Shown: positions 11,908 to 56,120 of the stretch, piece after piece | How the letters are laid out: every line of letters starts with the position of its first letter | Numbering within the stretch: the first letter of the stretch is position 1 | Assembly: GCA_946965045.2 (NCBI GenBank) | Contig: OX337232.1 | Span: 1,364,001-1,428,000 of the forward strand | Direction of reading: 5' to 3' | Length of the DNA stretch: 64,000 bases | Source of the DNA: Epithemia pelagica | Taxonomy: Eukaryota; Protista; Bacillariophyta | Program-made: the position numbers and the translations under genes | Notes under the pieces: generated by a model | What the model saw: only the letters and a program-made list of their open reading frames with translations | What the model was told of the DNA's origin: nothing | The model's database searches: none

Positions 11908-12124
11908 GCTTGATTTCTTCTTTTGAATCTGTTCCGACCCTAATTTGACAAAAGATCCGAAATCCCTTGTGGATGGCACGACAATAATGAGCGGCTTTAG
12001 TGCGACTTCATTCATGTTTTTATGCGACTGGACTATCGCCAAAATTTTAAATTTTGTTGCAAACTTGACGACGACGTTACCATTCTGCCGTCTTCTTGTA
12101 TCTGTCTCTACTGACAAACCAACC

Positions 12125-17427: not shown

Positions 17428-20400
17428 ATGAAAACGACGAATCGCAATTCGTTGTTCACGTTGGCACTCTCTTGGTGTCACATTCTATTATGGATACGTG
17501 GTCTTCCGAACGGAAATGCCAAGGAGGAGGATCATTCGGTCATTGCCTGGTTGAAAGACCAACCCGGTGGGTTCTTCCAAAGTTCCAAGATGGAATATCG
17601 CCATGGAGGCATTTATGCAACTGACTTCATTTCCAAGGGCGAGTTACTGGTCGTAGTTCCCACCAATGCCTTGTTTCATGGTGGCACAGTCGGCTTGGAG
17701 GATGGCACTGGCAGCAGCAACAACGAAAGCACTATTGACATGGATCGATATTACCAAAACAGTCCTCCCAATTGCAAAACAGCATGGCTTCTCGCACAAG
17801 AATATCAAAAAGTCAAGACAACCAAGACTCGCTCAAATACAGGGGACAATGCTGCGTCACACAACAAAAACAGCGACACGAGTCGTTCCAGTTTGTTTGG
17901 TCCCTACGTCCACTTTCTCATGCAAGAATTTGATCATGAATTCTTGCCATTGAATTGGTCTCCCCAAGCCATTGAGTTGATACAAAATGTTATAGTCGGA
18001 AAACGATTGGAACCTCAAGACTTTGGTCGTTTCCTGGAGGAAGAAGAGTATCAGAAAGAGGAGGATAAGAACCGTCCTCCTCCCGTGGGTTTGCTGTACC
18101 AACAACATTGTCCACAAGTATTGCATCGTCATAGAAGGAAACGAATGGAAGAACACAAGAAATCCATCAACAACGGCAACAAGGAAATGGTTGACGGAGA
18201 CGAGAACTATGAATTGTCCGAGGCATTTTTGAAAGATTTGGATGCGGCCTTTCGAATCGTCATTGCTCGAGGCTGGGGGGATGTTCTGGTGCCCGTTCAT
18301 GACATGTTCAATCATCGAAACAGTGGTGTGGGAACCAATCGGACCGGTTGCCACAACGATTGGCACAATGTCGATCGAGCACTCAGTCCAGAGTCTAGCG
18401 ATCGTGCCGAGGTGGACGAAGAACATCGCATAATTGCATTGCGAGACATTCGTCCCGGCGAACAGTTGCACAACTCGTACAGTCAATGCCACGATGTCAC
18501 ATGCCCCCTCTCCCTTCGAAATGTCTATTTGACACCTCAAATATTTCATGACTATGGTTTTGTGGAGCAATATCCCCAACGATGGAGCTTTGAGATTCCT
18601 GACGAGCCTTTTGTGGATGAAAGACCGCAAGTTGTTTTTGAATTGGATCAAATCAATGACAATCCGAATTCCTTGAAGTTATCCTGGTTAAGAGGTACAA
18701 CAAGGATTCCCACTGGACCGCGGCAACGTAATGTCTTATTCAGTCATTGGCAACGCTTAGAACAATTGTATCCTATTGTCAAGGATAGAACCGAAGAAAT
18801 GCTGGCAATGTTACCATCCTCTGCTTCCACCTCTCAACACGCTCAAACGCAACACGAAGTAAAGACAATTTGGGAGTATTACCGGGCCCTCACGACTGCA
18901 TTTCGGTACGCCGTATTGGCTGCAAATCATGCAGCGTCCATGGACAACAGCACCAACAAGAAGGACAAGTATTCGTACTACGTGGAGGACAACGAAGAAG
19001 AAACGAAACTGGAATCGCTCTTGACCTCCCTTCGCGCATCTTTGGACGACCACTGTCGTGCTTCAAGTCAAGGGATGGCCTCGGACGATTCATTGTCTGC
19101 AAGCTGTCAAGCGTCGTCCAAGTCGATGGATAATACGATCAACAGTCTTACTCAAGATGACGCCTCTCCGTCGACAGCAACTCCTCTTGTTCAAGGCAGC
19201 CGAGACACACAAGCCGTGGACAAAGAGGACACTAGCATGTCTGCATCACAATTGCGCACTGAAGAGTCGGCAGATGGTCTAGAACGACAATCTTCTTTGT
19301 TTGAACGGTCCTATGATCCTTTGGATGATCGTCAGGATACGTTGGACTATCAATTCCTCATGACTGACACGAATTGCAACTGGGAAGGGTATGATTGGGC
19401 ACCCACCAAGACGTCCGACTACTCCAGTAGTCGCATGTCTCGGATGCAGTTTGATCATCATTACAATCCAGAGCTACACAAATGGAATTCTTGCTTACAA
19501 ATCAATGAATGGTTACAATCGTGTACCTCCTTTCGTCCCCATTATCACGAGATTGTGGTCCACTATCCAGCCCTCTACGTGCAAGATCTTCGTCGCGTCT
19601 TGTTCCTTGGCGGTGGTGACATCATGATTCTTCACGAGATACTCAAATATCCAAATTTAGAATTAGTCTTGGGCATGGAATTGGATCCTCAAGTCCTTCG
19701 TTCCTCTTTCCGCAACACAGGTATTCAACCCAAGTTTGAGCATCCTGCCGTCCATTGGGCCTTTGGTGATGCCACCAAATCCTTGCTCATGATTCCCAAG
19801 TCCTGGTACGGAACATTTGATTTGGTCGTGGTTGATTTACAAAACTTTGTCTTTGATACAATCTTGGTCACACCAGAAATGACGATTATGGACTTTGTCG
19901 CACAAATGGTTTCACCGAATGGTGTCATTGCCCGCAATGATGACTTTGTCCGACGGAGAGGGAATATGAAGTACGCCAAGTACGTTGTCGAAGTCGAATT
20001 GCATGACGTCCCACGATTATGCAAACAGTCTTTGACCATGGCTAGTAACGGCATCGATTTTCTGCAAACGACTGTTCCCACCAAAAACTCCACCAAGACC
20101 GACGACTTTCTATTCTTTGATCCCGTTAATCGACACACCTCAAAGTCATGGACCAACTACCGGAATCACCATTCCGAAGTAGATTTACATGAACCGGTCA
20201 CACAGTCATCCGAACAGTCAAGCGTGAGGACAACCGAGCAATCTTCTCCGAACGGCATTTTGTTTACATTAGAAGTGGAAAATGCCACTGTTCCGTTGGG
20301 TATTTCCACCTTGGTACAAGCTAAAATTCGCCACGCACTGCTGAACCTCAGAATTTCATTGGAAATGACTGAGGATTCGTGGGGGCCGCTTGTTCGGGTG

Positions 20401-22740
20401 AACAGATTCCGAAAACAAAGTGGGGATTCTGCGCTTGTCATTGTCTTGCCAGAGGCCGGTTATGTTACGGCTCGTTTGTTTCCGAAACACAACTATTGCG
20501 CGTATGATATCCTGCTTTGGAATCATTTCGAAGACCAGTACAAAACATTGCATACACTGGTCGAAGCCGTTGGAGGACAATGGGCGAAGAATTCCATTTC
20601 AACATCCTTCTATAGTTCTGTTGCGATCGCTCCGTATGGCATCAAAGCCATTGAGGACAAACTGTCTACAACTGGTGAGAACCCAAACCCAGCAAGCCCT
20701 CCAACAGCAAATCTGCTGGAAGAAGATTGGCAGTCAAATGTACTGGTGGAAATGACCGAACGGCTAGGGCGTCCACGGTCTAGAGTTACGGATTTGTCCG
20801 TCTGGGTCGTCATGTGTGGCAAGACGACGGAACCCTGTCACAGTTTCGAAGCTTTGCGCATTGCGGCCGAAGAAAGTGGTAGACCTACGCACGTGGTTCC
20901 TTTATGGGCATGTACGGATTTGTCGCCGGCGGAGAAGCCGGAGTTCGAACGAAATAACTCCTCAAAGCGAGAAGAGCTTGATTTGGAAATTATGGCCACA
21001 TGTGAACTTCACACTCGCAAGTTTCTTACAGCCGCTACCACAATTGAAGTGAATACGAATAATGTGATCGTCGAAGAAAATCCGAGCGATCACAATACTC
21101 GCCATCCGAAGATCACCGCGGTTGTGATTGACGAGGAAACTCCCAGAGGAATGGGACAAGTACTTCATAAGATTCTTAACAACACTCGGACGCGCCATCA
21201 GCTTTGTGGCACAGAGTTTGTTATTATTGAACGGATAACCGACTCGTCCTCCACCGAGTCAACGGATAACGATTCGTCTACTTCGTCGTGGGCTTCTGTG
21301 TTATTGGAACGTGTACGAACCGAAATGATTCAATTCAATCCAGTGTTTCACACGGAAGCCCTTTTCACACCTGACGGCAGTGTGGACATGGAATCTCGAA
21401 TGACCCTGGGAATCTTGTCATCAGGAAACAAAGAGTTTTACGGTGACCTGTCAACTGCCCTTTCGCATATTCGACGCAACAGTTCGCTCACGACGGAGGT
21501 GTTGGATAGTAAAGCTGGTGTTGCTCGTTACTTGCCAGATTTTACCTTGTCAACGGAAGTGACTACCAGTGACTTCGATACGACAGATGCCAAGGTTCAA
21601 TGGAACAGCCAATTGCCGATTGGCCACCAATCTTTGTACCAGTTTGAAATCCAAATGCCACTACCCCCCTTGGCTGTCAATGACTACGTTCTCTGCAATG
21701 ACATTGAACATGTTTGGTATGGACTGTGGTACAATGGAAAAGTCACAGCTGTGAATACGGATGGAACCTATTCGGTTGTCTATGGAATGAATCGTAAGAG
21801 AGTCCTCCCCCGTCGAATGATCCGAAAGCTTCAACTTGACCCGACCACCGAGTACAAGTTTGCTGATCGCATCTTACTGCACAAACAAAATTTTGGTGTG
21901 CACGATGATGTCTGGTTCCAGGCATCTGTGACTGAAAAGATAAAAGATGGAGAATCACGGCAAGACGGGGACGACGTGAAGTACAAGGTTCAGATCTTGT
22001 CGGATGAACATGGGGAGCAAATTGCTTCCCCATCGGATATGATCTATCAAATGGAACAGCCCGACGCGAATGCTCATTCAGAGATAACACTGGATAAACT
22101 TGACACACTAATGCGGGAAACTATCATTCCCAGCGCCTTTGCGGCCCGAAACGATGCATACGGAGTCAATGCCAAGCTAAGACGACTTGAACACTTGATC
22201 GAGAACGGAAACATTTCCGACACACTCGATAAACTTGACAGTAACGACGACATGGATCACGGGACTGACGATGGTCACCTGCATCATCTATTGAAGAATT
22301 ATCATGTTACAAAGGTTGGGGATGGGTATATTCTGTCGTATTTGTGGTCCCCCGTGGAAAGTTTGATCGTTGTCTGGGATGGACGGACAAGATTGGATGT
22401 CAATCTCTTTTCAACTCATGGTAAACCAGAAGATGACTTTCGGAAAAGACTGGAGCGATCGTTTTTAGAGACCTTCGACTTTTTGACCACGACGATGCTG
22501 CATGAGCAACCTCGTGGGATTGGTCGTATTGTAAACACGGATCAAGAAAAGGAATCGTTCTGGTTTGGACAATTGGAGGAGTACCGTGACTTTGTATTAA
22601 AAGAAACGGAAAAGAACAACGGCATTGTACCCCATGTAGCCTCATTGAAGTTCCCCTTCGGTCGAAGCCTCGAGGTGGAAGGAGCACGGCAAAAGACGGT
22701 GAAACAACAACGTGCAAGCGCGTTTATGGAACGCTTGTAG
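17428..22740 (+). CDS. Secretory-pathway multidomain protein: signal peptide, SET methyltransferase, spermidine-synthase-like aminopropyltransferase, degenerate AdoMetDC-like domains and tandem Tudor. Putative long-chain polyamine synthesis/methylation fusion.
   Basis: Hydrophobic N-terminus. SET motifs GIYATDFISKGE, VPVHDMFNH, IRPGEQLHNSY, DYGF. Aminopropyltransferase motifs VLFLGGGDIMILHEILKYP..GMELDPQV..FDLVVVD. AdoMetDC-like ARLFPKHNYCAYDILLW and VVWDGRTRLDVNLF. Tudor-like WYNGKVTAVNTDGTYSVVY. Confidence 0.8.
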   Translation: MKTTNRNSLFTLALSWCHILLWIRGLPNGNAKEEDHSVIAWLKDQPGGFFQSSKMEYRHGGIYATDFISKGELLVVVPTNALFHGGTVGLEDGTGSSNNESTIDMDRYYQNSPPNCKTAWLLAQEYQKVKTTKTRSNTGDNAASHNKNSDTSRSSLFGPYVHFLMQEFDHEFLPLNWSPQAIELIQNVIVGKRLEPQDFGRFLEEEEYQKEEDKNRPPPVGLLYQQHCPQVLHRHRRKRMEEHKKSINNGNKEMVDGDENYELSEAFLKDLDAAFRIVIARGWGDVLVPVHDMFNHRNSGVGTNRTGCHNDWHNVDRALSPESSDRAEVDEEHRIIALRDIRPGEQLHNSYSQCHDVTCPLSLRNVYLTPQIFHDYGFVEQYPQRWSFEIPDEPFVDERPQVVFELDQINDNPNSLKLSWLRGTTRIPTGPRQRNVLFSHWQRLEQLYPIVKDRTEEMLAMLPSSASTSQHAQTQHEVKTIWEYYRALTTAFRYAVLAANHAASMDNSTNKKDKYSYYVEDNEEETKLESLLTSLRASLDDHCRASSQGMASDDSLSASCQASSKSMDNTINSLTQDDASPSTATPLVQGSRDTQAVDKEDTSMSASQLRTEESADGLERQSSLFERSYDPLDDRQDTLDYQFLMTDTNCNWEGYDWAPTKTSDYSSSRMSRMQFDHHYNPELHKWNSCLQINEWLQSCTSFRPHYHEIVVHYPALYVQDLRRVLFLGGGDIMILHEILKYPNLELVLGMELDPQVLRSSFRNTGIQPKFEHPAVHWAFGDATKSLLMIPKSWYGTFDLVVVDLQNFVFDTILVTPEMTIMDFVAQMVSPNGVIARNDDFVRRRGNMKYAKYVVEVELHDVPRLCKQSLTMASNGIDFLQTTVPTKNSTKTDDFLFFDPVNRHTSKSWTNYRNHHSEVDLHEPVTQSSEQSSVRTTEQSSPNGILFTLEVENATVPLGISTLVQAKIRHALLNLRISLEMTEDSWGPLVRVNRFRKQSGDSALVIVLPEAGYVTARLFPKHNYCAYDILLWNHFEDQYKTLHTLVEAVGGQWAKNSISTSFYSSVAIAPYGIKAIEDKLSTTGENPNPASPPTANLLEEDWQSNVLVEMTERLGRPRSRVTDLSVWVVMCGKTTEPCHSFEALRIAAEESGRPTHVVPLWACTDLSPAEKPEFERNNSSKREELDLEIMATCELHTRKFLTAATTIEVNTNNVIVEENPSDHNTRHPKITAVVIDEETPRGMGQVLHKILNNTRTRHQLCGTEFVIIERITDSSSTESTDNDSSTSSWASVLLERVRTEMIQFNPVFHTEALFTPDGSVDMESRMTLGILSSGNKEFYGDLSTALSHIRRNSSLTTEVLDSKAGVARYLPDFTLSTEVTTSDFDTTDAKVQWNSQLPIGHQSLYQFEIQMPLPPLAVNDYVLCNDIEHVWYGLWYNGKVTAVNTDGTYSVVYGMNRKRVLPRRMIRKLQLDPTTEYKFADRILLHKQNFGVHDDVWFQASVTEKIKDGESRQDGDDVKYKVQILSDEHGEQIASPSDMIYQMEQPDANAHSEITLDKLDTLMRETIIPSAFAARNDAYGVNAKLRRLEHLIENGNISDTLDKLDSNDDMDHGTDDGHLHHLLKNYHVTKVGDGYILSYLWSPVESLIVVWDGRTRLDVNLFSTHGKPEDDFRKRLERSFLETFDFLTTTMLHEQPRGIGRIVNTDQEKESFWFGQLEEYRDFVLKETEKNNGIVPHVASLKFPFGRSLEVEGARQKTVKQQRASAFMERL

Positions 22741-42535: not shown

Positions 42536-45500
42536 CTAGCCTGGCCCGCTGGGTATTTTGGATACGGCTGTTGTATTCTCTGTTGCGCAAAGTGTTGAGA
42601 TTTGTTTGTTCAAGTGTGTGGCTAAAGAGGAAACGATTGCATGTGAGAGGGAAGCTTTGGCGAAATGGCCAATGGAGTTGATATATGCTTCTGGAAAAGA
42701 AAAGCCTGGAGTCCTGGTTGTGGCTTTTGCGGCAAGATTGCCTGGGAGGTCTTGGAGATTTTGGTACAGAGCGAAAGAGGCTGGATGTTTTTTGGATCTT
42801 GATGGGTTGCGTCCAAAGTGGTCATCGGTCCAAGCAGGAGGAACCGCAGAGGAGAATGGGTGTGGGAGGTCGTCTGGGTGGAACAAGATAGAGTGTGCAA
42901 AAGAGCCCAGGGAGCCCAAGTGATCAATGGTGAAAGGAAGAAGATAGATTCCGTTTTGGAGGAGGTGCACGGCGGTGTCATTGTCCCGACAGAACTTGGA
43001 TCGCGCGGATTCCTGATGCGGCCTCGAAGCAGCAGAGGCAAGGGCGGTATGGTCGGCCGGGTCAGGAAGTGGCGTTCTGGTCGGAGGAGGGGGGATGGTG
43101 ACATCCAGAGCGACGTAGTCGAAGGCCTCGTTCTTGTAGGGTTGACGTAACAATAAACCAACGTCGACGGGTCTGATGTTGCGTGAATGTTGTGGTGTGA
43201 GACCCGGTGGTTCGATGTGAACGTCTTGATGGTCTTCTACGAGGCCCACTTGTGGGGCCAAATGTTGCAACACGTCAAATACGGCGTCTCGGATGGTGTT
43301 AGAGAGGGCCGTTTTGTGGGCGGCCGTGCACGAGAACAGATGGTCGCCTTTGGGGTCTAACAAAGGTGCGGCGGTGCAGTGGCATTTACGGTGACGGAGG
43401 GAGTCCGGCAGGACTGGGAGTCGGAGTTTTCGCTTGATGGCGGTGGAAAAGGTAGCATTGTCGAGGCGGAAGGCTTCGGCTGGTCTGGGTAGGTGCAGCG
43501 CCAGGCTTGTGAGAGGGGACAAGGCAGAAGGGAGGGACGGCCGCGTACTCGCTGGTGTGGCTTCAATCAACGCCGGGACAGTGTGCTCGACTAATGTGTG
43601 GTGGAGGAGGTGGCGATGGGTGGCACGGTCGAAGCGTGTTGGATTGGTGATAGCTTCGGAGGCAAATTCGTTGGCAAACAGGGCCAAAGATCGACGGTAA
43701 GTCACGAGCCAGGGGAGTTCGCTATGCTCCCAGTCTGACCAAAAGTGTTTGTGTGGGTTAGGTACTGGTGTGTCCCTGGAGGCCGCTAAACGAATGGTTC
43801 TGGCTGTCTGGGTTATGAGGGACGGGCGGGCTGCGGCCGAGGCATGGGTGTATCCCAGTCCGCCGAGACGATTCGGCAAAGTCGCGATGAGGGTGGCCGT
43901 GTTGGTAATGCTGGTCGTTGGGAGGGCTGTGACGAGGGCGAGGAACTTGGTGACAAGGAGTTGGGTGGCCTGTGTTGTGGGGCTGTCCCAGCTTGTGGTG
44001 GTTGCTTGTGTGTCGGGGTGGGCGAGGACAAGGTCCGAGGGAAGAGGTGCAGGATGGAGGGCACCACCGAGTAGCGGAAAAGGTGGCTACGCGTTTGGAG
44101 GTCTGGAAGGGACGAGAGAAGTTCCATCTTGGCGGCAATGGCGGTGAGTCTGAGGTTGATGAACTGGCGAGCGAAGTCCTTGGAGTCAATTGGCTGGCCC
44201 AGGAACCGCGTGCCTCCTGTGATTTCCCTGCGTTCGGGGTGTTGTGGGTCCAACATGGTGAGGGCCTTTCGCAGGTATTGGCTGTTTTCGGTAGGGAGGG
44301 AGTCGATCGGGGAAATGCCTGTTGTTGTTGTGAGGATGAGTGTCTTTTGCTTGTTGAGGTCGATCCCCAGCGGTCGCCCGAGTTCCTCAAACCGGTGGAT
44401 AAACCAAGGGAGGTCTTCATGGGGGAGGCAGATGGACGTGTCGTCCATGATCGAAGCCGTGTGTGCCTGACCTCCCTTTCCATCGTCGTGTGTGTTGCCC
44501 GCCTTGAGTCTTTCTGCTGCCCGCTGCCGTTGTTTGTCGTTGAGTGTGGAGGTGAGGGCTTCTAAGACGAGGAAGGAGAAAAGGGGGCTCAGGGGGCAGC
44601 CCTGGGGGAAACCCTCTGTCTGCATCAGTTTGTCTGGGTCGTTGTTGTCATTGAAATACCAAGAGGGGGTTGCTGCTTGTGTCAGCATGTCGAAGAGTGG
44701 GATGAGCGGGGCAGTGGCGTCGTGTTTAAGCAGAATCTTCCGTGCCTCCGTTCTCGATGTGTTGTTGAACATGTTGTGGAGGTCAAGGAGGATGAGCGCT
44801 CTCGTTGGTGTTGGTGGTTTGATAATGTGTTTGTGGACTGCTGCCGTTGTTGTGTGGGCGACGAAATCGATTCCGCCTTCAACTTGTATTCCGTATTGTC
44901 CCCCTGCGACCAGCAGCGGGCGGACGGTCTCGGAGACGTGGACGAGAGCGACTTTGGCTGTGAGTCGTCGCAGTGCCGTGCCAATCCCAATGGGTCTCAG
45001 CCGTTCCAGGTTCTCGGGGTCCTTGTGAAGGGCCAAAAAGTAGTTGCTTCCGAGGATGGAGTGCACGGCGGGGGGAAGCTGCGCCGTGACCAGGAGTTGG
45101 AGAAGTTGTTGCATGTTGTTAAAGTATGGCCGTGTTGAGTTGGGCGCTCTCGTTGTTCTGTGCAAGGCCATGGAAACTAGTGCATCAGTGCATGATGCGG
45201 AAGGGCCGGAGGCTGTGCCCGTCTTCATCTGTCTGAGGGCCAGCTCAAACTGCCCACTATCCAGTTGCATGAATTGGCGTGGGGGTGGTGGATGGTGGAG
45301 ATGGCCTTGGTGTCTGGTCGTTTGTGGAGGGTCGCGCCTGGGGGGAAAGAGGTCCTTTCTGATTTTCTCAATTCGCTGTGGGGTCAAGGTTGCTGTTGGC
45401 ATTTTGGTAGTGAGGCGGTTGAAAGCGGTGGAATAGTTTCCCGCGTCCGCTGCTCGTTGTGCTGCTGCTACTCGACCTTGTGGGATCGGAGTCGTTGCCT

Positions 45501-46272
45501 GGGAGTTGTTGGAGGGGGTTGGTTGGGGACGGTTGTTGGAGTTTTGGTTTGTTGTTGTTTGGTGGCTGTGCTGGGTGGAGTCTTGGTTGGAGTTCCAGAT
45601 GGATTCGTAGAGGTCCCTGATCTTGCCTTTTTTGATCAGCTGGTGTCGTGCTCTAAGTGCATCTGATGGTCTCTTGTGGCCGGTCATGGACGTGGGTGCG
45701 AGCAGGAGTGGCTCGAGTATCAGTATCAGTTTCCAAAATGGGGTGGCGTCTGTTTGGCATGGGTGTGGCCTTGTGTCTCTTTTGGTGTCTTCCCTCAGTG
45801 GTGGGGTGGCTTCCAGAATCCAGTTGACGGTGTTGTTATACGCTACAAAGTATTCTTTTCTCAGAGGATGCTTGAGTTTGTGCCAAATTGTTCTGCAAAT
45901 GGGTGGCGGGGTGATGTTGAGTCCGTGGAGGAACTCGATGGATTCTTTCCAGTTGGCTTTGATGGTGTCGTCGGCGTGGCGGTACGTGTTTAGAACTAGT
46001 TGTAAATTGGTGATTGTCCTAGTATGTTTATTGTCTTGGTGGTTCTTGAGGTGCCCTTGCGACGTGTAGATAGTGCTCGGTTTATTGCACTGTAGGCATA
46101 CGTGCATTCCGTGTCGTCGGCAGAATTCTTCGTCCATGTGGGAGTGAATGAGATGCTGTTTTAGTTGGTGAACGGTGTCTTTTTGGTTGTTTTTTTGGTT
46201 GGGGTTGGGTGTTGACTTCCAGTCGCAATTTGGGACCGGACAGCGTTTGATTGGCTTGGTTGTGGTACTCAT
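42536..46272 (-). CDS. Retrotransposon ORF2: two C2H2 zinc fingers, reverse transcriptase, CCHC knuckle and restriction-like endonuclease; one 1-bp frameshift
   Basis: Zinc fingers CPVPNC..HLIHSH and CLQC..HQDNKH. RT motifs LRPIGIGTALRRL, QYGI, LDLHNMFN, GFPQGCPLSP, IMDD, LGIDLNKQKT, FLGQPI. One extra base in the G3 run at 44039-44041 gives ..LHLFPSDL..TLPNRLGGLG. RLE region CHC..DPKGDHLFSC, RPVDV, ALDVTI, PFTIDHLGSLG. Confidence 0.85.
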
Positions 46273-47924
46273 TTGGCCCCTTGGCCCTGTGTTTCATGCT
46301 GGTCCACATGGCCGGGGCGGGGGCCGGCGACGCGGGAATTGGGCGGCCGTTTCTGTTTTACGAGCCGCTCCGCAAATTCCCAGGCGTCTTGCGCGTCGGT
46401 GTCCGTCGAAAAGGACTGTATTTTTTCGATGTATTCTTCAATTGCCGGGAGCTGGGCGCTGTTGTGGTGGTGGACGAACGCTGTGATCTGGTGGAGCTCT
46501 TCGGACGTGTTTTGTGAAGGATTGTTTGTTGGGTTTTCGTTGTCTGGTTGGAGGAGGGGGTGGGATCTGTCTGATTCGGACATATTGTCCCATTCGTCTA
46601 AATCTTCTTCGTTCATCTCGACGTCGTTCGGGTTTCCTCCGTGATACCGGTCGGTCTCTTCGTTGTAAGAGTCTTCCGGTCGTTCCCCGAGGATGGAGTA
46701 TCTGTTCGTGGACGAAAGGGTGGAGAAAGTGTTTTGGCTGTCTGCTGTGACTTCGTAGTCTGCTGGTTGGTTGTATCTGGTGTCGATGAGGCGGGCGGCG
46801 GTTTCGGCTACCGTCGTCCAATTGGAGTTGTCGTCGTATGGGTCGCTGTCGTTTTCGTGGTCGTTGTTTGTTGGTGTATCGTTGGATGGTGCTGCACGCT
46901 TTCTCGGAGGAGGGGTTGTTGGTGTGGTGGATCTCGGCCGTGTGGGTGTTGTTGTTGTTGTAGTGCTGTCTCCGGTATGCTGGTTTCGTTGAGTGATTCG
47001 GCGGGTGAGATCGAGGAGCCGTGAAGTATGTGTGGCCTGTTGGTGTGTTTGATCGTTGTTGTTGTGTTCCTGGCCTGGGGCTGGTGGTGCCGCTGCTGCT
47101 GCCGCCATGGTGGGGCAAAGGATGTTTGTTGGAAACCCCGGGCAATTTCTAATGGTTGTTGCGTTCAGGTGGTGGGTGTCTGGTGTACGGAGCAGATGCA
47201 GGTAGTATGCAACTGGTTCCGGGTCGTGGTGGCAAAATTCAGGATAGGCTGCCTGGTAGTGTGGGATCTCGGTGAGTTGGTCCCATTCGTCCTCTGTGGC
47301 CAAGTCGTTCAGTGGGTGGAGGCGGATTCTGACACTTGCCCCGAAATGTTGGTCGAGGTCTTTGAGCGCCTCGAGGGTGGTGGTTCTGGTTTGTTGGTTC
47401 TACGGGATGGGAAGCACTTGCAATGCGTTTTCTCGCCAAGTGATTTCGTTTCCCTTGGCGGCCTGGTGGAAGGCGTTGTAGGCGCGGAGGAATATTTTGA
47501 AGTTGTGCCTCGATGACGCGGAGAAGTAGATGACTGGCACCTGGCCTCGTTGTTTGTTGCGAAGGTCTCCGCTAAAGGTGCCGTCTCTGCAGCCGAAATG
47601 TTGGCTAAAATCGTCGAACAATTGGAATTGGCTGGGGAGGTGGCCGAAGAGGTGATCGTGGATGGTGGTGGATAGGTCGAGGTATCCTCGGCAGTGTTTC
47701 ACTGCGATTGCCGGAATTCCTGCTATAATTCCTTGTGTCGTAGAGCTGCGGTTGTTGCATGCAGGGATGTAGATCTCTAACTCCCTAAAACGGGGGTTGA
47801 CGGTCGGGTTTGATTGCTGTGCTCCATGGCGTAAGATCCATTGCGCACCGTGTCCGTCGTTGCAAAAATCGTCGCGGTGGTGTTTGTGCCACATTTGTGT
47901 GGCGAATCGTAGGGCTTGTTCCAA
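46269..47924 (-). pseudogene. Retrotransposon ORF1, interrupted by a single in-frame TAG
   Basis: ORFs 47400..47924 and 46269..47303 are in the same frame, separated only by the TAG at 47400-47402 and 32 open codons. The final TGA overlaps the ORF2 ATG (ATGA at 46272-46269). The start is uncertain. Confidence 0.6.
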
Positions 47925-48145
47925 GTAATTCTCCGTATCGAAGGCGTCGTTTGCCGGTGCCGGGCGCAGGGTGAGGTGGAAGGACGAACTGTGGCCGCGT
48001 TGTCCTTTTATTATATATTATATTTTAGTCTGTGCGCCCCCCCAATTCTCAATGGTCAGTCATTTTACCCCGTCTTGCTGGTGATTAACTTCCGCAATTT
48101 ACGGTCGTAGTACGAATCGAAAATCGAAACAACAGCAGCAACCAA

Positions 48146-48221
48146 TACCCCCAAGCAGGGGTGAGAATCAGGTGGTCTGTCCGTCAGTCGTCAAGGAGAA
48201 ATCTATTCTCACCCCCATGGC
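48146..48221 (+). repeat. Left TIR of the AcademH-like element
   Basis: TACCCCCAAGCAGGGGTGAGAATC, then a 24-nt spacer, then AGGAGAAATCTATTCTCACCCCCATGGC. Confidence 0.95.
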
Positions 48222-48459
48222 GCGAGGGTCAAAATTTGGCGATTTCCCGAGGCTGATACAAAATCCATTGCACCTCAACGCATCCACCACGAGGCCAAAC
48301 GTGTGAGGTCCATTGCATCGGCCATTGACCTTTCTTCACCGCACCTTTTGTCCCAACCTTCTCCTCTCACTATTGGAAGGCCCTCCTCTGTCCCACTCCC
48401 GTCCAAACGTCGTCGTTACATCTTGAGAACCCCCAAACGCCAACCACATTTCCACCACC

Positions 48460-50508
48460 ATGAATGGAGATGATGACCAAGCCCATTACACCCAAGAACC
48501 ACCTTACCTCTCCTTCCGACCACCCACGAGAACATCTAGTACCCTCCCCAACCTGTCACCTGAGGAACAATCACTGGAAGAGGCCATCACACTTTCATTT
48601 AGTGATTGGCATGGGAAGACTGCGCGCCCCTGGCAAGTAAAAGCATGCAGAGAAGTCCTTCATCGCCATATTGACCATCCTTCCAATGGTATATTGCGTC
48701 CCCTTCTTCTCGTCCGATCCACTGGTGGCGGCAAATCGGCTGTGCGAGACGTCTCAGGCTTTCTTTGCGGCGGTATAACGTTGACAGTGGTCCCTCTTCT
48801 AAGCTTAGCAGCGGACCAAACGTTGAAATTGGAACAATTATCCATGGACATGCAACTGTTCAACCGCTTGCATGTCTTCAACCTTGACCTCGTCCGATCC
48901 TCTGCACTCAATGAACAGTTGCGCAAGAAGCTCGAGTCTCTACCCGCGGACGAGTCCTCCACCACAACCGTCTCTCTTTTCACCTCACCACAGAAAATAA
49001 CAACTGATCCTGATTGGCAAAAGACCATTGCCACTTGTTGCCAGAATGGAACCCTTCGCCTCCTTGCTGTCGATGAGTCTCACCTTTATGCATGTCACGG
49101 AATGGAGTTCCGAGAAGAATTTGGCCATCTTCGACGATGTCTTTTCCGCATCGCAGAAAAGCACAGTAAGCACCCCATCCCAGTGCTCTTTATGACTGCT
49201 ACTCCATCCATAGCGATGATCAATGATTTACAACAATTAACGGGTTTATCATTTCACCCACGAGACGATCTTGTTTGGCCATGCTCTCATTCCGGCGTCG
49301 AGCGTCGCAACATTTACCTTGAGCTGACGGTCAGGGACAAACCATTCCGACGCATCAAAGCAGACCTAACCAAAACATGCAAGAGGAAGGGAGGTCGCAA
49401 GATGATTGTATATTCCAATTCACGGAAGGCAATTATCAACTTGCATTCAAAGTGTCGCCAGCACTTGAACGTGTTGGGTATTCAGAAAGATCTGCTCCTT
49501 GTTCATGGGAACATGTTCAGGGAGCAGAAATTTCATCACACCGAACTGTTTTCAGGCCAGCCCCTATTGGACGAATGCCCTACAACCCGAATGGTCATGC
49601 GATTTGACCCTGTTGCCTACTTTGCTACTGCTGGAACAAGTAGTTCCGGATTGGATTGCGCAGAAGTGGATAAGGTAATTTTCCAGGGATTTCCTTCAAG
49701 TATAGAAGACCTTCTACAGTGCTCTGGACGCTGTGGCCGTAACGTCGACGCTCACCCCAGTACCTCTTCCTTCTGTGTAATCTTGTCTCTGAGCAGTCTC
49801 GTTGCATTAATGACTCGTATTTTTATCCTTCCCAAAATTGAGGAATCTCGAGCAACACAGGACATTGAGGGACAATCAGCCAACGATTCAATACAACAAG
49901 ACAACCGTACTACTGCTGCCCAAGCGACAACCCTTGGACGCACTGAATTGGCTGAGCGCCAGTGGAAGAATGTCGTGCAAGTTGCGTCTTTACTTTGTCT
50001 TGACAACGGCCGCTGTATACACATGCAATTGGAGGAACTAATGCTGCACCCCCATACCTCTACAATTTGTGACTTGCCCACGTCCTGTGGCAATGCATGT
50101 TGGCGCTGTTTGCCGTCTGCCGTATCCACGCCATTTGACGCACCCATTGACAAGGATCGATTCAAGGACTATTTGATTGCAATTTTCATTACTGAGAAGC
50201 TAGTTCCTTCCAAGCTTTCTCTTCATCGAGACTGCTTCTTGAACGAACTCCTTGGGTTTGAGACAATGGGACCGAATGGCAAGCCTGTTGCCATCTTCCA
50301 CAAAGCTGTGTTCGGTGTCAAGGCACAACAAACAGCTCGTCCACGTGCCAAAGCCTTGTTAGTGAAATGTTTTGCCGCTGGGATTTTGGAGCCAGAGGTG
50401 GATGGCTTCCAACTTCGAGTAAAACTTGGACACCGTCCCAATGGAAATCCTGTGCTCAATGACGACAAGGCGTGGGACGGGTTCAAATTGAAAAAATTTA
50501 GTACGTAA
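48460..50508 (+). CDS. RecQ-like SF2 helicase (transposon-encoded), 682 aa
   Basis: RPWQ, RSTGGGKS, VVPLLSLAADQ, FTSPQK, LAVDESH..GMEFR, LFMTAT, IVYSNS, SGLDCAEV, QCSGRCGR, and a Cys cluster CIH..C..CGNACWRC. Confidence 0.9.
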   Translation: MNGDDDQAHYTQEPPYLSFRPPTRTSSTLPNLSPEEQSLEEAITLSFSDWHGKTARPWQVKACREVLHRHIDHPSNGILRPLLLVRSTGGGKSAVRDVSGFLCGGITLTVVPLLSLAADQTLKLEQLSMDMQLFNRLHVFNLDLVRSSALNEQLRKKLESLPADESSTTTVSLFTSPQKITTDPDWQKTIATCCQNGTLRLLAVDESHLYACHGMEFREEFGHLRRCLFRIAEKHSKHPIPVLFMTATPSIAMINDLQQLTGLSFHPRDDLVWPCSHSGVERRNIYLELTVRDKPFRRIKADLTKTCKRKGGRKMIVYSNSRKAIINLHSKCRQHLNVLGIQKDLLLVHGNMFREQKFHHTELFSGQPLLDECPTTRMVMRFDPVAYFATAGTSSSGLDCAEVDKVIFQGFPSSIEDLLQCSGRCGRNVDAHPSTSSFCVILSLSSLVALMTRIFILPKIEESRATQDIEGQSANDSIQQDNRTTAAQATTLGRTELAERQWKNVVQVASLLCLDNGRCIHMQLEELMLHPHTSTICDLPTSCGNACWRCLPSAVSTPFDAPIDKDRFKDYLIAIFITEKLVPSKLSLHRDCFLNELLGFETMGPNGKPVAIFHKAVFGVKAQQTARPRAKALLVKCFAAGILEPEVDGFQLRVKLGHRPNGNPVLNDDKAWDGFKLKKFST

Positions 50509-50530
50509 TGAAATATTAAATGAATACTTA

Positions 50531-53500
50531 TCAATGATCCTTCTGACAGTCGAATTTGTATTTCTTAAAAATATTCACTGACCGATCCAATCGATTTCCA
50601 ACCAATGTTCCGCTGTCACTACGATTACTCCATCCAAGCCCTGGTCCCTCCTTTTCCATGTCTTCCAGTCTGGCAAAGAGCTTGTACCGTAGGAAATGGT
50701 GCTCCCTCTCTTTTCTAGCCGCTTCCCACTCTTTGCCAGCAATAACATTCTTTTCTCCCATCTCTTCAAGGGCAACTGATTCCAAGTCCTTTGTTGCAAG
50801 CACGTTCAGTTCCACTATCTTCATCCCCTTTACTCTCTTCTTCTCTTGTAGAAGGCGATTGTCTGGTGGCATTGCTGTTTCGTTTTCCTCCTCCTTCTCA
50901 TTTACCTTGCATTTCTTTCCATTAGACCCATCATCTTCCCCTTCATCCTCTCCGTCTCCTTCGTCTACATCCTCTTCTCCATCCAATGCTTCAGTCTCGT
51001 TTGCTTCGTCTGCAAGAAAGTCTTCTACCTGGGTTTCGTCGAATTGAGTCTCTGGCTCGTCCACCTCCCCTGAGTTCACTCTCGTTATTCCCCTCTCCCC
51101 TTCGTCCTCATTATCATGTTCATCTTCGTCAATGGTTACGTTTGTTTCATTCCCCTCAGCAAAAGCTTCGTCTTCAATATCAATGACTGCAACATCATCA
51201 TCACTAAAATATGAACGATCCCCTGTTGACCCCTCATCATCTTGTTCTTTCATTGCCTCCGCTAGGTCAATTTCAGTTGTGTCATCCTCTCCTCCATCTT
51301 CAGCCAAGGCACTTCCTTTGCTGTGCTGCGAATCATCGTCCCTGTCACGTGCAGTTCCTGATGCAGACTTGGATGGGATCATGTTACTCACTTTCACCAT
51401 TACAAATTCATGAGTTGCGTCGTTCTCTACCCTTCCATTTCCACAACGATGATGCTTCTTCTGCACTTGGAGTTGTGTGGAATCAAGTGCCCGCCAAAAC
51501 ACGTTCTTATCCACAACAACATTGCTCTCATTACGAACCTCATGGCACTTCGCCTTGAGCAAGACCTCTGTAACCAAAACACGGTTTAGGCGATTGTTCG
51601 GAATGGTAGTAGTCTTGTTGCTTTGACAGGGATCCACCACCTGGTCTTTCTCTTTTGCTTCCTCATCATCAACTATGCCGGCGGACTCCATGAAACGTTC
51701 TGCAAGCTCGTACTCTCCATCACCTCGACCTCGAGTGTAGAATTGAACAAATTGCTTGGCCCGTTGACAAGCTGTCAACATCTGGGACACTCTTACAAAC
51801 GAAGCCTCCGTTCCGTTGTGATTCATACTCTTGAAGAATGGCATTAGCCGTTCCATGATCTGGTCAAGAGCGCTTTCTTTGGGATAAAGGGTGTACTTGT
51901 TGCTGCGAGCTTTTTGATGCTTCGTCCGGTTGATCCGTATTTGTTGCAATATAGAAATGGGAATCCGGTTGTAATAGAGCTCCATCAACCTCAACTGCGT
52001 GTTGAAAGAGTTTGTCTTTTTTGTTGCATAGAAAATTGGCAGATACTCTACTACAGCAGATTCCATTGCCAGGGCATCGCCTTGTTGCTCACCTTGGAGG
52101 AATGTCATGTACTTTCGTACAATGAGGAGGAAATTGCACAGATACCGATGTAGCCAATCTCGACTCTCCCTCACTTGTTTGTTGAGATAAAGCAAGTACT
52201 CCTTCGCCAAGTACACAGCTAGCAGCTCTTGTTTATTATGGTGAACATATTCATCAACTTTCTCTTCGCTCACACACCGCAAAATGAACACGTCTAGCAT
52301 GATGCGATCAACTTCTTCATAGACTAAGATTGCGAGACGATGTGCAAGTCGGTAGCTCTTGGAGACATCACCACCATCAATTCGCTTCCATTTGAGTCTA
52401 TGTTGCATGCACTGCAGAAATCCACCGTAGAAGAGACGGTAGATTGCGTCCAACATGTGGAAACGAACGTGCAGATCGCCATTGATAGGCACCACACGAT
52501 GTAGTACTTGCGAGATAGTAATGGCTTGTCGATAGGCCGTACGGAATGACGCCACTTTCGCATCCGTTATAGCCATCACGTCATCAAAGAACTGGAACAT
52601 CCGATCGATGGAGAGGCCATCTCCAACAACAAACAACCATTTATCCTCCCACTTTTGACCGTGGCGGTATAACTCATTTGTCTCATCCCATTGCAGAAGG
52701 CCATGCAAAACCATAAAGTCTAGGATTATGCCTGCAGCGCCTGTTTTTGTTGTTTCGTCCAGCACCGAAACGGGAAGGATTAGCAACTCGGCAACTGGTG
52801 GCGTATGCCGCCAAGTATGGACAACACGGATGGGAAACTGCCGGGCAACTTCGAATATGTTTGATTCTCGGTTCTTACGGAGACCACGCAAAGCGCTAGC
52901 AATATTGGCTCTTGCATGGTTGAGGGAGAATTCTGGTGGCTGTAGAGTGTAATCTACCTTGTATCCAGGACGCCGCTTTGTTGACAAGAAACGTTTCAGG
53001 TGCTGTATCTCTCGACACCAAGCAATAATTTGTTGATATATCCTCACCCGTGTACCGGAACAATCAAAAGGATTACCAGATGGCTCGGAGTCAACAGGAA
53101 ACTGATGTCGGAAGATAGAGTTCAGCGTATCAACCAAGCCAAATTGCAGGTCAGATGATTCAAAGGCCGGCATCTGATAGGCGCCTGGTATAGCTTGTTG
53201 GATGTAAGTTAATTTAGGCCGTTCCAAAAATGTGTAGACCCAAGATGGAAAGCGAGCAATGTACATAGACATGACAAACCGAGCAGTGACTCTTGTGTAC
53301 ATCGAACTCTGGCCTTGTTGGAAGGCAAGACGACGACCATCCTGCAGATTATCAAACACGCACAATAAACTTGTCACGTTCCGGAGTGCTTGTCGTACCC
53401 TGGTGTCGTAGGATTGTAGCCAGGGTTCTACCCGTCGTTCCATGGTGCGTTTGGAAACAGCAAGACCTATCCAGACTGGAATTTGCGTAGCGAACAACGG

Positions 53501-55795
53501 ATGCCCGCATGCGTATTGTGCCAGTGCAAAAAGCATGCCAAAAGACACAAGCGCATGGTTGTTGTGTTTCCTTGCTCGAATGATGAACTGGAAAAACACA
53601 TCAAGACTAAATCTCTGGCGTAAGAAAGCCCGTTCCTTCGACGGTGCAAGCTCAACCTTCTTGGTGTATCCACTCAATGCCATGAGGGTATTGAACTGAT
53701 CCGGCAAGTATTTTTCAAAATCTGTGACCATCTCTCTGGTCTCATGTTCCGACAGGAACTTTTCAAAAATGTTGTTAAAACGCCCAAAACATTCCTCCAT
53801 GCGATCCCAGAGACGACGATCGATATGTTCACAGAACTTCTTCACTTGTTCGCTACCATCAATGATAGGAGGAGGTGGTTCATCTGCCTTCAGACGGGCA
53901 TCGTGTAGCTGGGCTAAAACAGTGTTGTGTTTCTCATTTGCTTCGGCATGCATCTGCTTGATTTGTAGTCGCTCCCATACACTCTTAAGTTCGGCGAGCA
54001 TGAACCGGTCACCTGGGGTTTCCTGTATGAGGCGATGGAGAAGGGTGAGCCGTTCTCCGCCGTCTTCTTTCACTCGCTTGAATATGTGAGACCAAGTTCG
54101 TTCGGGATGATAATCCGCCTGAACAAAAACACCCTGAGGGTAGTTGAAAATTTTGAACCAAGTAAGACACTCTCCAATACAGTCGGTCGGCGGCGTTGTG
54201 AATTGACAGTTGTCGGAGGAGAAGATTGGGAATTTGAAATGCGTCCCATATTGGAGGTGTTCATTCATGGCGTCAACAATATGTTTGTAAAGTTGCGCAT
54301 CAGTAACATGTCGGAGGTCGGGGTTTTTCAAGACCCAGCCAGTAAGTTGGTGGTAGGAGCGACCTTCGAATAGAACGGACGGAACGTAGTTGGATTGTGA
54401 CGTATCTCGCAAAACTTTACTCCACTTCTTGGCGTACCGAGGGGGGAGAATTGCGGCGTTGAAAAACAACGCAACAGGAGTGCCAATCTTGAGGAACCAA
54501 AAGTCTTCAAGTAACATTGTGCGCAACCCAAAGGATGTTACCATTTGGACCGATGAAGGAAAAGACTGCTCATCCTCCGCTGTGTCCTCAGTGTCAACTG
54601 TGTCGCTTGAACCAACGTGTTTACGCTTGTTGGAGGTTTTGTTATACCGACGTTGTTTAGTGATCCCTGCGGACGATCTCGTCACACCCATTGTGTAGTT
54701 TTTTGCCTTTCGCATCAAGGGGCCACAGTAGTTGGCTACCAACGACAGATTGCATCGCTTGTCTGGGGATGTGGCAACAACAATCATCGGAGGGTGGTTC
54801 TTCGTCGAGTCTCCTGGATTGTTACATTTTAGGGAAGGCTGTCGTCGCAAAGGAAAAAGGAAGGAACCATCTTGAATCTTCTTAATTTGCACTTTCAAGT
54901 TTGGATACTGGACTTGAGGTTGCAAGATGGTGGACGGATTTCCTCTACGAACCAGACCAGAACCAAGGCGCTCAAGAGATTCTGTGGATTGCGTGTTGTC
55001 CGTGGTGTCGGTAGTGTTCGGGCCTGTAGTAGACGGTGAAGGGGCAACAGCGCCAGTTACAGGGACGGTACCGGGTGGAGGGGCAACAGCTGTAGGGACG
55101 GTATCATTTGTTGCAGTAGGGTGGTCAGCATCGTCGTCGTTGTTGCTTTGGTTGACGGGACGCTGGGCATTCTTGTCAGGGGAAGGGTCCTTGGAAGCCT
55201 CGATCGCGCGCAAAAGGTTCGACGATTTTGGTGGTGACGATTGGGTGCCAAATTCGACCAATCCAATGGAGTTACAACGGTGATAAAGGTTAAAAGAGGA
55301 GGACGACAGACGTGATTTTTGAGACGGTGCGTTCGACGCATCGGCACCATTGGAACCTGGTTCGGTAACGCCTCCTGGTATGGTAGAGACGGGAGGAGGG
55401 AGCGCGTTGAAGCGAGGGGTTCTTGTGCTGGATGGGCCGCTCGAGATGGAACTTGTAGCAGTAGCACTATCCAAAAACGTTGCTGGTTCGGGACGAGTGT
55501 AGTTTGGATCGTTGCGGCTGTTCGGCAAACGAGAGGCTTGAGGTGTCTGGTAGGGATGAACAGCAAGGGACAACGGAACTGGATTGGTGCTTTGGATGGA
55601 AGAAGGATTGTCTTGTGTTGCTGATTCGTTCGGTGTGGTTTTGGCGATGCTGTTGTTGTCGCCTTGATTGGTCAATGATGATGCATCCGATGAGACACTG
55701 TGACTTGCAAAAGCCGCCCTGACTTCCCGTTGAGAAAGACGACGACGTTTGTGTGAACAATCGGATGACATGAATATGATATCCAACCACCGCAC
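50531..55795 (-). CDS. Putative Academ-type (DUF6589-like) DDE transposase, 1,754 aa, with disordered N-terminus and acidic C-terminus
   Basis: LCVFDNLQ, LPVSVLDETT, VVGDGLSIDRM, NGDLHVRFHMLDAIYRLFYG, ALDQIMERL. It lies between the TIRs. NLS-like HKRRR near the start. Confidence 0.75.
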   Translation of the reverse strand: MRWLDIIFMSSDCSHKRRRLSQREVRAAFASHSVSSDASSLTNQGDNNSIAKTTPNESATQDNPSSIQSTNPVPLSLAVHPYQTPQASRLPNSRNDPNYTRPEPATFLDSATATSSISSGPSSTRTPRFNALPPPVSTIPGGVTEPGSNGADASNAPSQKSRLSSSSFNLYHRCNSIGLVEFGTQSSPPKSSNLLRAIEASKDPSPDKNAQRPVNQSNNDDDADHPTATNDTVPTAVAPPPGTVPVTGAVAPSPSTTGPNTTDTTDNTQSTESLERLGSGLVRRGNPSTILQPQVQYPNLKVQIKKIQDGSFLFPLRRQPSLKCNNPGDSTKNHPPMIVVATSPDKRCNLSLVANYCGPLMRKAKNYTMGVTRSSAGITKQRRYNKTSNKRKHVGSSDTVDTEDTAEDEQSFPSSVQMVTSFGLRTMLLEDFWFLKIGTPVALFFNAAILPPRYAKKWSKVLRDTSQSNYVPSVLFEGRSYHQLTGWVLKNPDLRHVTDAQLYKHIVDAMNEHLQYGTHFKFPIFSSDNCQFTTPPTDCIGECLTWFKIFNYPQGVFVQADYHPERTWSHIFKRVKEDGGERLTLLHRLIQETPGDRFMLAELKSVWERLQIKQMHAEANEKHNTVLAQLHDARLKADEPPPPIIDGSEQVKKFCEHIDRRLWDRMEECFGRFNNIFEKFLSEHETREMVTDFEKYLPDQFNTLMALSGYTKKVELAPSKERAFLRQRFSLDVFFQFIIRARKHNNHALVSFGMLFALAQYACGHPLFATQIPVWIGLAVSKRTMERRVEPWLQSYDTRVRQALRNVTSLLCVFDNLQDGRRLAFQQGQSSMYTRVTARFVMSMYIARFPSWVYTFLERPKLTYIQQAIPGAYQMPAFESSDLQFGLVDTLNSIFRHQFPVDSEPSGNPFDCSGTRVRIYQQIIAWCREIQHLKRFLSTKRRPGYKVDYTLQPPEFSLNHARANIASALRGLRKNRESNIFEVARQFPIRVVHTWRHTPPVAELLILPVSVLDETTKTGAAGIILDFMVLHGLLQWDETNELYRHGQKWEDKWLFVVGDGLSIDRMFQFFDDVMAITDAKVASFRTAYRQAITISQVLHRVVPINGDLHVRFHMLDAIYRLFYGGFLQCMQHRLKWKRIDGGDVSKSYRLAHRLAILVYEEVDRIMLDVFILRCVSEEKVDEYVHHNKQELLAVYLAKEYLLYLNKQVRESRDWLHRYLCNFLLIVRKYMTFLQGEQQGDALAMESAVVEYLPIFYATKKTNSFNTQLRLMELYYNRIPISILQQIRINRTKHQKARSNKYTLYPKESALDQIMERLMPFFKSMNHNGTEASFVRVSQMLTACQRAKQFVQFYTRGRGDGEYELAERFMESAGIVDDEEAKEKDQVVDPCQSNKTTTIPNNRLNRVLVTEVLLKAKCHEVRNESNVVVDKNVFWRALDSTQLQVQKKHHRCGNGRVENDATHEFVMVKVSNMIPSKSASGTARDRDDDSQHSKGSALAEDGGEDDTTEIDLAEAMKEQDDEGSTGDRSYFSDDDVAVIDIEDEAFAEGNETNVTIDEDEHDNEDEGERGITRVNSGEVDEPETQFDETQVEDFLADEANETEALDGEEDVDEGDGEDEGEDDGSNGKKCKVNEKEEENETAMPPDNRLLQEKKRVKGMKIVELNVLATKDLESVALEEMGEKNVIAGKEWEAARKEREHHFLRYKLFARLEDMEKEGPGLGWSNRSDSGTLVGNRLDRSVNIFKKYKFDCQKDH

Positions 55796-55874
55796 CTCCT
55801 CCGTCGTGGTGGATGCGGGGTGGATGAATGTGGTATTTGGAATTTTGTATCAGCCTCGAGAGCTGGGTGGACGA

Positions 55875-55950
55875 GCCATGGGGGTGAGAATAGATTTCTC
55901 CTCATAGTACGACTCACGCGCGACCAGATTCTCACCCCTGCTTGGGGGTA
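55875..55950 (-). repeat. Right TIR of the AcademH-like element
   Basis: Exact reverse complement of both left-TIR blocks (55927-55950 and 55875-55902), with a different 24-nt spacer (55903-55926). Confidence 0.95.
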
Positions 55951-56120
55951 AGCAACCAACAACAGCAACAAACAACAACAGCAACAAACAACATCAGCTG
56001 CCATCGCGCCGCCCAGTCGTCTCCGATTGATGTTAATCAGAATCAAAGACCAGCTGAACAGTTGAATCCAAACTGACAACACGCAACAGACTACATACTC
56101 ATACAACAACAACAATAGAA

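Follow-up and report, generated by a model that had tools for sequence, protein, structure and literature searches.

Eukaryotic DNA transposons of the AcademH kind generate target site duplications of 9 or 10 bp, whereas those of AcademX measure 3 or 4 bp, and this difference has been linked to the presence of a helicase or a nuclease, respectively (PMC10045372). The hosts named for AcademH in PMC10799480 and in the title of Kojima 2020 (Mobile DNA 11:15) are animals and fungi, and no link between Academ and diatoms or stramenopiles was found in the literature searched. Here, a 64,000-nt stretch of the Epithemia pelagica genome (contig OX337232.1, positions 1,364,001 to 1,428,000; hereafter referred to as the window, in whose own numbering all positions are given) was found to harbour a transposon of 7,805 bp (48146-55950) with genes for a transposase and a RecQ-like superfamily 2 (SF2) helicase. 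With a probability of about 80%, we consider this element to be a complete, recently active, autonomous AcademH-like cut-and-paste transposon of a diatom. The helicase, the DUF6589/RNase H transposase, the terminal inverted repeats (TIRs) and the 9- or 10-bp duplications all fit the AcademH-like reading proposed in a first-pass annotation made from the sequence alone, as judged against published descriptions of AcademH.

Both ends of the element are marked by the 24-nt terminus TACCCCCAAGCAGGGGTGAGAATC, located at 48146-48169 and, as the exact reverse complement, at 55927-55950; these are its only two matches within the window (chance expectation 0). The inverted repeat as a whole extends over 79 nt with 81% complementarity (48146-48224 versus 55872-55950), and subterminal inverted blocks reach beyond it, inward as far as 48292 on the left and 55804 on the right. 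The perfect 9-bp duplication AGCAACCAA abuts each end. The principal outlines drawn by the first-pass annotation, namely the 7,805-bp unit with TIRs (given there as 76 bp), the perfect 9-bp duplication and the two uninterrupted convergent open reading frames (ORFs) 22 bp apart, agree with the termini, with both flanks together with the empty-site contig described below, and with the ORF coordinates listed in Table 1.

When ten ends from five families were aligned together with a metagenomic relative, they proved to be bipartite. The terminal block, with the consensus TACCCCCnAGCrGGGGTGAG, is followed by a variable spacer and by a second block, TTCTCACCCCC(A/T)(T/A)GGCGCG, which contains an inverted copy of part of the terminal block; two subterminal blocks are kept as well. 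In the element of the window, the helicase-side end is composed, in order, of the terminal block TACCCCCAAGCAGGGGTGAG, the variable spacer, the second block TTCTCACCCCCATGGCGCG, the block CAAAATTTGGCGATTT and the subterminal blocks. The ~16-nt block CAAAATTTGGCGATTT (48230-48245) is present at the helicase-side end only, and this in all five families (L001, L008, L009, L010 and that of the window), so the two ends are systematically different. The helicase-side end probably doubles as the promoter and 5' untranslated region of the helicase gene, and the transposase-side end probably does the same for the transposase gene.

Table 1. Features of the transposon and its immediate borders, in window coordinates.
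Feature	Position	Strand	Evidence or remark
Left target site duplication, AGCAACCAA	48137..48145	.	Single in the X3 empty-site contig
Helicase-side end	48146..48292	+	Block architecture common to five families; contigs of other copies break exactly at 48146
RecQ-like SF2 helicase gene, 682 aa	48460..50508	+	Pfam DEAD and Helicase_C
Spacer between convergent stop codons, 22 bp	50509..50530	.	ORF map
Transposase gene, 1,746 aa from first ATG (55771)	50531..55771	-	ORF map; pN/pS
DDE catalytic core, residues 620-1380, with all-helical insertion domain	51632..53914	-	AlphaFold2 model, structural matches, DUF6589
Proposed triad codon D807	53351-53353	-	Invariance and fold
Proposed triad codon D1051	52619-52621	-	Invariance and fold
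Proposed triad codon E1307	51851-51853	-	Invariance and fold
Transposase-side end	55804..55950	-	Terminal and second blocks as at the other end; without the helicase-end block
Right target site duplication, AGCAACCAA	55951..55959	.	Abuts right end

Four public runs of this organism (X1 to X4) supplied contigs for comparison with the window over 47200-53100. One contig of X3, a DNA run, matches the left flank as far as 48145 and there passes into 21 nt that are the same as 55960-55980, a string unique in the window; it hence represents an empty site in which AGCAACCAA occurs once. Because of a linked indel, namely an AAC inserted after 48127, this contig is assigned to a different haplotype bearing the pre-insertion allele, and somatic excision is ruled out as the source of the empty site. 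Other contigs of X1, X2 and X3 match exactly from 48146 onward and are preceded by foreign flanks, one of which is that of the copy L012 described below. Taken together, the empty site and the contigs with other flanks indicate that the insertion is hemizygous or polymorphic and that the family has further copies.

Two such copies were located in the same ENA assembly. The first (L011, ctg1290l) is 99.37% identical to the copy of the window over 7,805 bp, without indels, is flanked by the 10-bp duplication CAATCAACCG and has both ORFs intact; the second (L012, ctg1107l) is 99.27% identical over the same length, likewise without indels, is flanked by the 10-bp duplication GGTGCGGGCC and contains one stop codon per gene. 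By majority rule among the three copies, 14 changes in 7,805 bp are private to the copy of the window. The same assembly holds four sister families with transposases 60-70% identical, all of which keep the TACCCCC termini. These comprise L009 with a 9-bp duplication (TGAGTCCAT), the two identical copies L001 and L002 with the 9-bp duplications AATGGAGCG and AGTGACCGG in swapped arrangement, L008 with a 10-bp duplication (TGGAGCTCTC) and L010, in which the duplication (CTAGGTGGTG) also measures 10 bp and the helicase gene is split. Altogether, four of the eight insertions have 9-bp and four have 10-bp duplications, with no common target sequence; this count leaves out L006, the Skeletonema copy L013 and the decayed L014, the duplications of which are unreadable. 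The first-pass annotation had suggested looking for copies with different 9-bp duplications and for an empty site; L011 and L012 have distinct 10-bp duplications, and the empty-site allele is present in X3. Its description of the element as young and probably autonomous is supported by this allele, the 99.3-99.4% identical copies, the intact ORFs and the purifying selection reported below.

As regards the swapped duplications, the element at L001:5820-13646 has AATGGAGCG on its left and AGTGACCGG on its right, whereas at L002:5820-13646 the two have changed sides. Such a swap suggests either that the copies underwent a reciprocal exchange, by ectopic recombination or translocation, or that the assembly switched between them within the 7.8-kb repeat. 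Elsewhere on the contig of the window, L014:10001-15608 contains a decayed relative, 65% identical and with no recognisable termini, in which the transposase is truncated (1,135 aa) and the helicase is split.

The larger of the two genes lies in an uninterrupted open frame on the minus strand (50531-55795; 1,754 codons when counted from a GTG at 55795). The N-terminal part of its product is of low complexity with a conserved SHKRRRLSQ motif, and its tail is acidic. A word-based profile search returned proteins of the same assembly only; a profile search against 1.84 billion representatives yielded 927 relatives at an expectation value (E) <=1e-3 and 404 at 1e-10. Against Pfam DUF6589 the whole protein scored 25.6 bits (cut-off 27) and the excised core 27.9 bits, and 26 of 39 family members matched the domain with a best E of 2.4e-12. 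The AlphaFold2 model of the core based on an 89-sequence alignment reached a predicted local distance difference test score (pLDDT) of 92.2 and a predicted template modelling score (pTM) of 0.90, superseding a first model from a 7-sequence alignment (pLDDT 49.7). Its neighbours among AFDB fold clusters are mostly annotated as "DUF6589 domain-containing protein" (E 2e-14 to 3e-8), and those in the ESM Atlas belong to DUF6589 clusters of Cnidaria, Basidiomycota and Mucoromycota, the best template modelling (TM) scores being 0.69/0.60 over 599 residues; at the level of the fold, the core shares 9-14% identity with fungal and animal DUF6589 proteins.

Nothing significant was obtained when the core model was compared with the PDB by Foldseek. 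VIA-align found matches among solved structures, the best of which were all DDE transposases or integrases: Hermes (Z 9.0 and 8.7), Tn5 (Z 7.7), the P element (Z 7.4, 356 aligned residues), ISCth4 (Z 7.1), retroviral integrases (Z 6-7.7) and RAG1 (Z 5-6). To judge from the model, the 1,746-aa protein is a predicted DDE transposase with an RNase H fold and a helical insertion. The first-pass annotation had named the lack of an RNase H-fold/Academ match for the large ORF among the findings that would refute it; an RNase H-fold match is provided by the model (pLDDT 92) and the DDE structures, next to the match with DUF6589.

In the model, D807 corresponds to the DN motif on the first RNase H strand and D1051 to the GDG motif, which follows closely on the fourth strand. 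The integrase alignments end at model residues 714-724, which places the last catalytic helix near D1303-x-x-x-E1307. None of the four residues D807, D1051, D1303 and E1307 varies among the aligned sequences. Based on the strand positions, the integrase alignments and this invariance, D807, D1051 and E1307 are proposed as the catalytic triad. Residues G1098 and H1101 are invariant too, the intervening residue of this G-x-x-H signature varying between D, P and Q; the signature sits where other superfamilies carry C/DxxH. Among the motifs that the first-pass annotation listed for this protein, the acidic residues of DN, GDG and DxxxE are invariant, and the supposed DxxH is really a G-x-x-H with a variable D.

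The helicase ORF is uninterrupted as well, and its product retains intact Walker A (GGGKS, aa 89-93), DESH (205-208) and motif VI (QCSGRCGR, 420-427) sequences. Among solved structures, it is best matched by E. coli RecQ, BLM, RECQ1, RECQ5 and WRN (E 4e-8 to 1e-5). Together with the DEAD and Helicase_C matches and motifs I, II and VI, these relatives confirm the RecQ-like helicase predicted at first pass, and the Pfam check suggested there returned these two domains for the helicase and DUF6589, at 27.9 bits, for the excised transposase core. In sister elements the helicases are 59% and 29% identical where the transposases are 64% and 37% identical, so that the helicase co-varies with the transposase.

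Run X4, which derives from another sample and is of low depth and of a kind not recorded, possibly RNA, covers only 48436-50376, the helicase ORF, and leaves 50549-53100, the examined part of the transposase gene, without coverage. Provided that X4 represents RNA, this would mean that the helicase is transcribed, the transposase having gone undetected; the pattern raises the possibility that the two genes are expressed separately. In one X4 contig, 122 nt of the helicase ORF are skipped (49675-49796, with the ends GTAA..CAG). A real splice at this place would cause a frameshift and give a 419-aa product without motif VI; the skip is anchored by 27 nt only, and the contig originates from a slightly different copy.

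Selection was compared among the three near-identical copies, so that the counts are small. Between copies, the transposase has a ratio of nonsynonymous to synonymous polymorphism (pN/pS) of 0.21-0.35 (binomial p 2e-6 to 3e-3); in the helicase this ratio is 0.16-0.36 and significant in two of the three comparisons. The non-coding ends of the window copy and L011 show 0 differences in 493 nt. These values indicate that both genes and the ends were maintained during the spread of the family. Given its pN/pS of 0.16-0.36, the helicase is probably needed rather than carried as a passenger, and the element as a whole, judged by its sequence, is very probably autonomous.

Among the private C>T and G>A changes, seven of eight in the window copy and 11 of 20 in L012 fall in CpG, as would be expected if the copies were cytosine-methylated. 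The CpG-borne changes of the window copy, the missing X4 coverage of the 3' half of the transposase gene and the stop codons already present in L012 might speak for a copy that is intact in sequence and nevertheless immobile, being silenced or dependent on a master after the burst has ended. This explanation seems most improbable, as the window copy has accumulated just the 14 private changes with its ORFs and ends intact, and its insertion is still hemizygous or polymorphic.

Relatives of the transposase that carry a species name were found in Skeletonema marinoi, as two "hypothetical proteins" (KAK1743298.1 and KAK1733536.1), and in Pedinella sp. CCMP2098, as transcripts; others come from many marine metagenomes. 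When looked up, the 20 best long profile matches were environmental or from Skeletonema or Pedinella. The locus of S. marinoi (L013) has TIRs with the termini CACGCTGTAGTCC... and a convergent, truncated helicase gene. In metagenomic relatives at 20-37% identity, the transposase gene is followed by a convergent helicase gene, as in the window; a distant metagenomic relative (L004:7636-14998) shows the same pairing, but its termini, CACACTGTAGTAC..., differ from those of the window element and are similar to those of L013. The pairing of transposase and helicase is kept in all relatives examined. The first-pass annotation had expected the element either to extend the range of the lineage or to indicate horizontal transfer; the range extension is favoured, and transfer need not be invoked, given the relatives in Skeletonema and Pedinella. 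These sequences make it more likely that the elements have long resided in ochrophyte stramenopiles than that they arrived by one recent horizontal transfer.

These relatives also bear on the question whether the elements belong to Academ in the strict sense. They could constitute a separate DUF6589-type lineage of stramenopiles and marine protists, either a sister of Academ or a third deep branch, in which the helicase and the 9-10-bp stagger would be independent. The fold-level identity of 9-14% to fungal and animal DUF6589 proteins, the borderline Pfam score and the environmental, Skeletonema or Pedinella origin of the 20 best long matches among the 927 relatives are in line with such a lineage. 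Yet the helicase, the TIRs and the 9- or 10-bp duplications make up all operational hallmarks of AcademH, and the nearest named folds belong to the very phyla in which it is reported, which renders a separate origin unlikely.

Several observations weigh against the AcademH-like, autonomous and recently active character of the element. The repeat flanking L004 is 8 bp long (ACTTACTC); the DUF6589 score of the whole transposase stays under the cut-off, which the excised core alone passes; and the coverage of X4 is confined to the helicase. Moreover, we infer that DUF6589 is the Academ transposase only from the shared host range, fold and gene layout; in the literature searched, the only paper mentioning DUF6589 makes no connection with transposons. 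Autonomy and mobility, finally, are read from sequence.

A broader interpretation, offered tentatively, is that the stramenopile elements represent a deep, hitherto unrecognised helicase-bearing branch of Academ or beside it, which is widespread in marine protists and the DDE transposase of which depends on the helicase. The suggested dependence follows from the selection on both genes, the asymmetric bipartite ends, G+C-rich and self-complementary, and the possibly separate expression of the helicase. Should this be true, a family still jumping in a diatom would make it testable why a cut-and-paste element needs a helicase.

The arrangement of the AcademH-like element allows a mechanism to be proposed. 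Each end would combine a conserved bipartite repeat with a promoter for one inward-pointing gene. The transposase may bind the TACCCCC...GGGGTGAG / CTCACCCCC blocks, two per end, with the extra helicase-end block telling the left end from the right, and would then cut the element out and integrate it at a target site opened with a stagger of 9 or 10 bp. A co-selected accessory function is proposed for the RecQ-like helicase. We hold it about as likely as not that this helicase works in one of two ways, either melting the G+C-rich self-complementary termini for assembly of the transposase or acting at the excision gap. In the latter case, by analogy with BLM, which promotes synthesis-dependent strand annealing after P-element excision, it would channel the gap into this pathway, so that the donor copy would be restored and copy number raised.

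The host genes of the window are in agreement with its origin. The product of the Peptidase_M50B gene (11945-12961) has relatives in Epithemia clementina (81% identity), Cylindrotheca closterium (59%), a Thalassiosira (44%) and Skeletonema menzelii (42%). As all named relatives of this gene are diatoms, the host is a raphid pennate diatom, and the "probable diatom" of the first-pass annotation is thereby borne out. Large polyamine-synthase-like proteins are typical of diatoms, and a 1,770-aa ORF with a spermine/spermidine synthase domain is located at 17428-22740. Directly to the left of the transposon, the G+C-rich and strongly GC-skewed region 42536-47303 carries minus-strand ORFs, including one for an RVT_1 reverse transcriptase; it is a retroelement, and the transposon lies within a repeat-rich patch. 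At L001:1986-3530, ~2 kb from the sister element, lies an ORF that faintly resembles 2OG-Fe(II) oxygenases.

To our knowledge, AcademH is among the least studied eukaryotic transposon lineages, and we know of no active copy characterised experimentally. The present element would bring helicase-carrying Academ-type transposons, reported so far from animals and fungi, into the ochrophyte stramenopiles, with a pennate diatom, Skeletonema and Pedinella as hosts; in public databases the relatives are labelled only as "hypothetical protein". With its intact genes, exact ends, hemizygous or polymorphic insertion and 99.3-99.4% identical copies, it is a candidate live element, and the population-genetic evidence suggests that selection maintains its helicase. 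The family could be a test bed for the role of a RecQ-like helicase in DDE transposition or in the repair of the donor gap, and an active DNA transposon of a diatom could serve insertional mutagenesis.

Among known systems, Helitron (HUH Rep and Pif1-like superfamily 1 helicase, no TIRs or duplications) is excluded by the TIRs, the duplications and the SF2 RecQ-like helicase beside a DDE transposase. The best structural matches of the core, i.e. hAT (Hermes), the P element and RAG1/Transib, share with it the RNase H fold and a large all-helical insertion before the catalytic glutamate, but identity is 8-11% and Z at most 9; duplications of hAT and P are 8 bp and those of Transib 5 bp long, and none of these is known to encode a helicase.

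It was also considered that the element might belong to another known superfamily and merely happen to carry a helicase, the candidates being MuDR/Rehavkus-like elements, KolobokH and Dada. MuDR/Mutator transposons resemble it in their TIRs, in a DDE core with an insertion and in duplications generally known to be ~9-10 bp long, and ISCth4, of the IS256 family, and MULE clusters occur among the weaker structural neighbours of the core; they differ from it by the C/DxxH signature and the MULE domain, and they are not known to carry a RecQ-like helicase. No Pfam match to MULE or Transposase_mut at E<0.01 was obtained for the element proteins or the core, and in view of this and of the G-x-x-H signature, MuDR was rejected despite the fitting duplication length. 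KolobokH and Kolobok-1_CCri, too, are DDE transposons with a RecQ-like helicase, encoded on the complementary strand in Kolobok-1_CCri as well, and Kolobok has been found in a diatom (PMC9587614). However, Kolobok is defined by 4-bp TTAA duplications, 5'-RR..YY-3' termini and C/DxxH (PMC9587614), none of which holds here: 0 of 8 duplications are TTAA and the signature is G-x-x-H. Dada inserts into multicopy small RNA genes and has a DxxH motif (PMC3706591); in the present case no Rfam family was found at any of seven loci, and the motifs around the catalytic D residues differ. Membership in any of these superfamilies is accordingly very improbable.

AcademX shares the presumed transposase superfamily with the AcademH-like element of E. 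pelagica. It is distinguished by an XPG nuclease fused to the transposase and by 3- or 4-bp duplications (PMC10045372), whereas the diatom element has a helicase and 9-10-bp duplications, and no Pfam match to an XPG domain was present in its proteins. With AcademH, on the other hand, it has in common the large DDE transposase, the separate RecQ-like SF2 helicase, the TIRs and the 9- or 10-bp duplications, and its nearest folds are from DUF6589 proteins of Basidiomycota, Mucoromycota and Cnidaria, as are the AcademH hosts. The TACCCCC bipartite ends, the helicase-end block and the G-x-x-H signature are described from the families of this genome and their relatives alone. Unlike reported AcademH, the element resides in a diatom and has relatives in Skeletonema and Pedinella. 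AcademH is thus a kind of transposon already known, and the diatom element is probably an added member, which would widen its host range.

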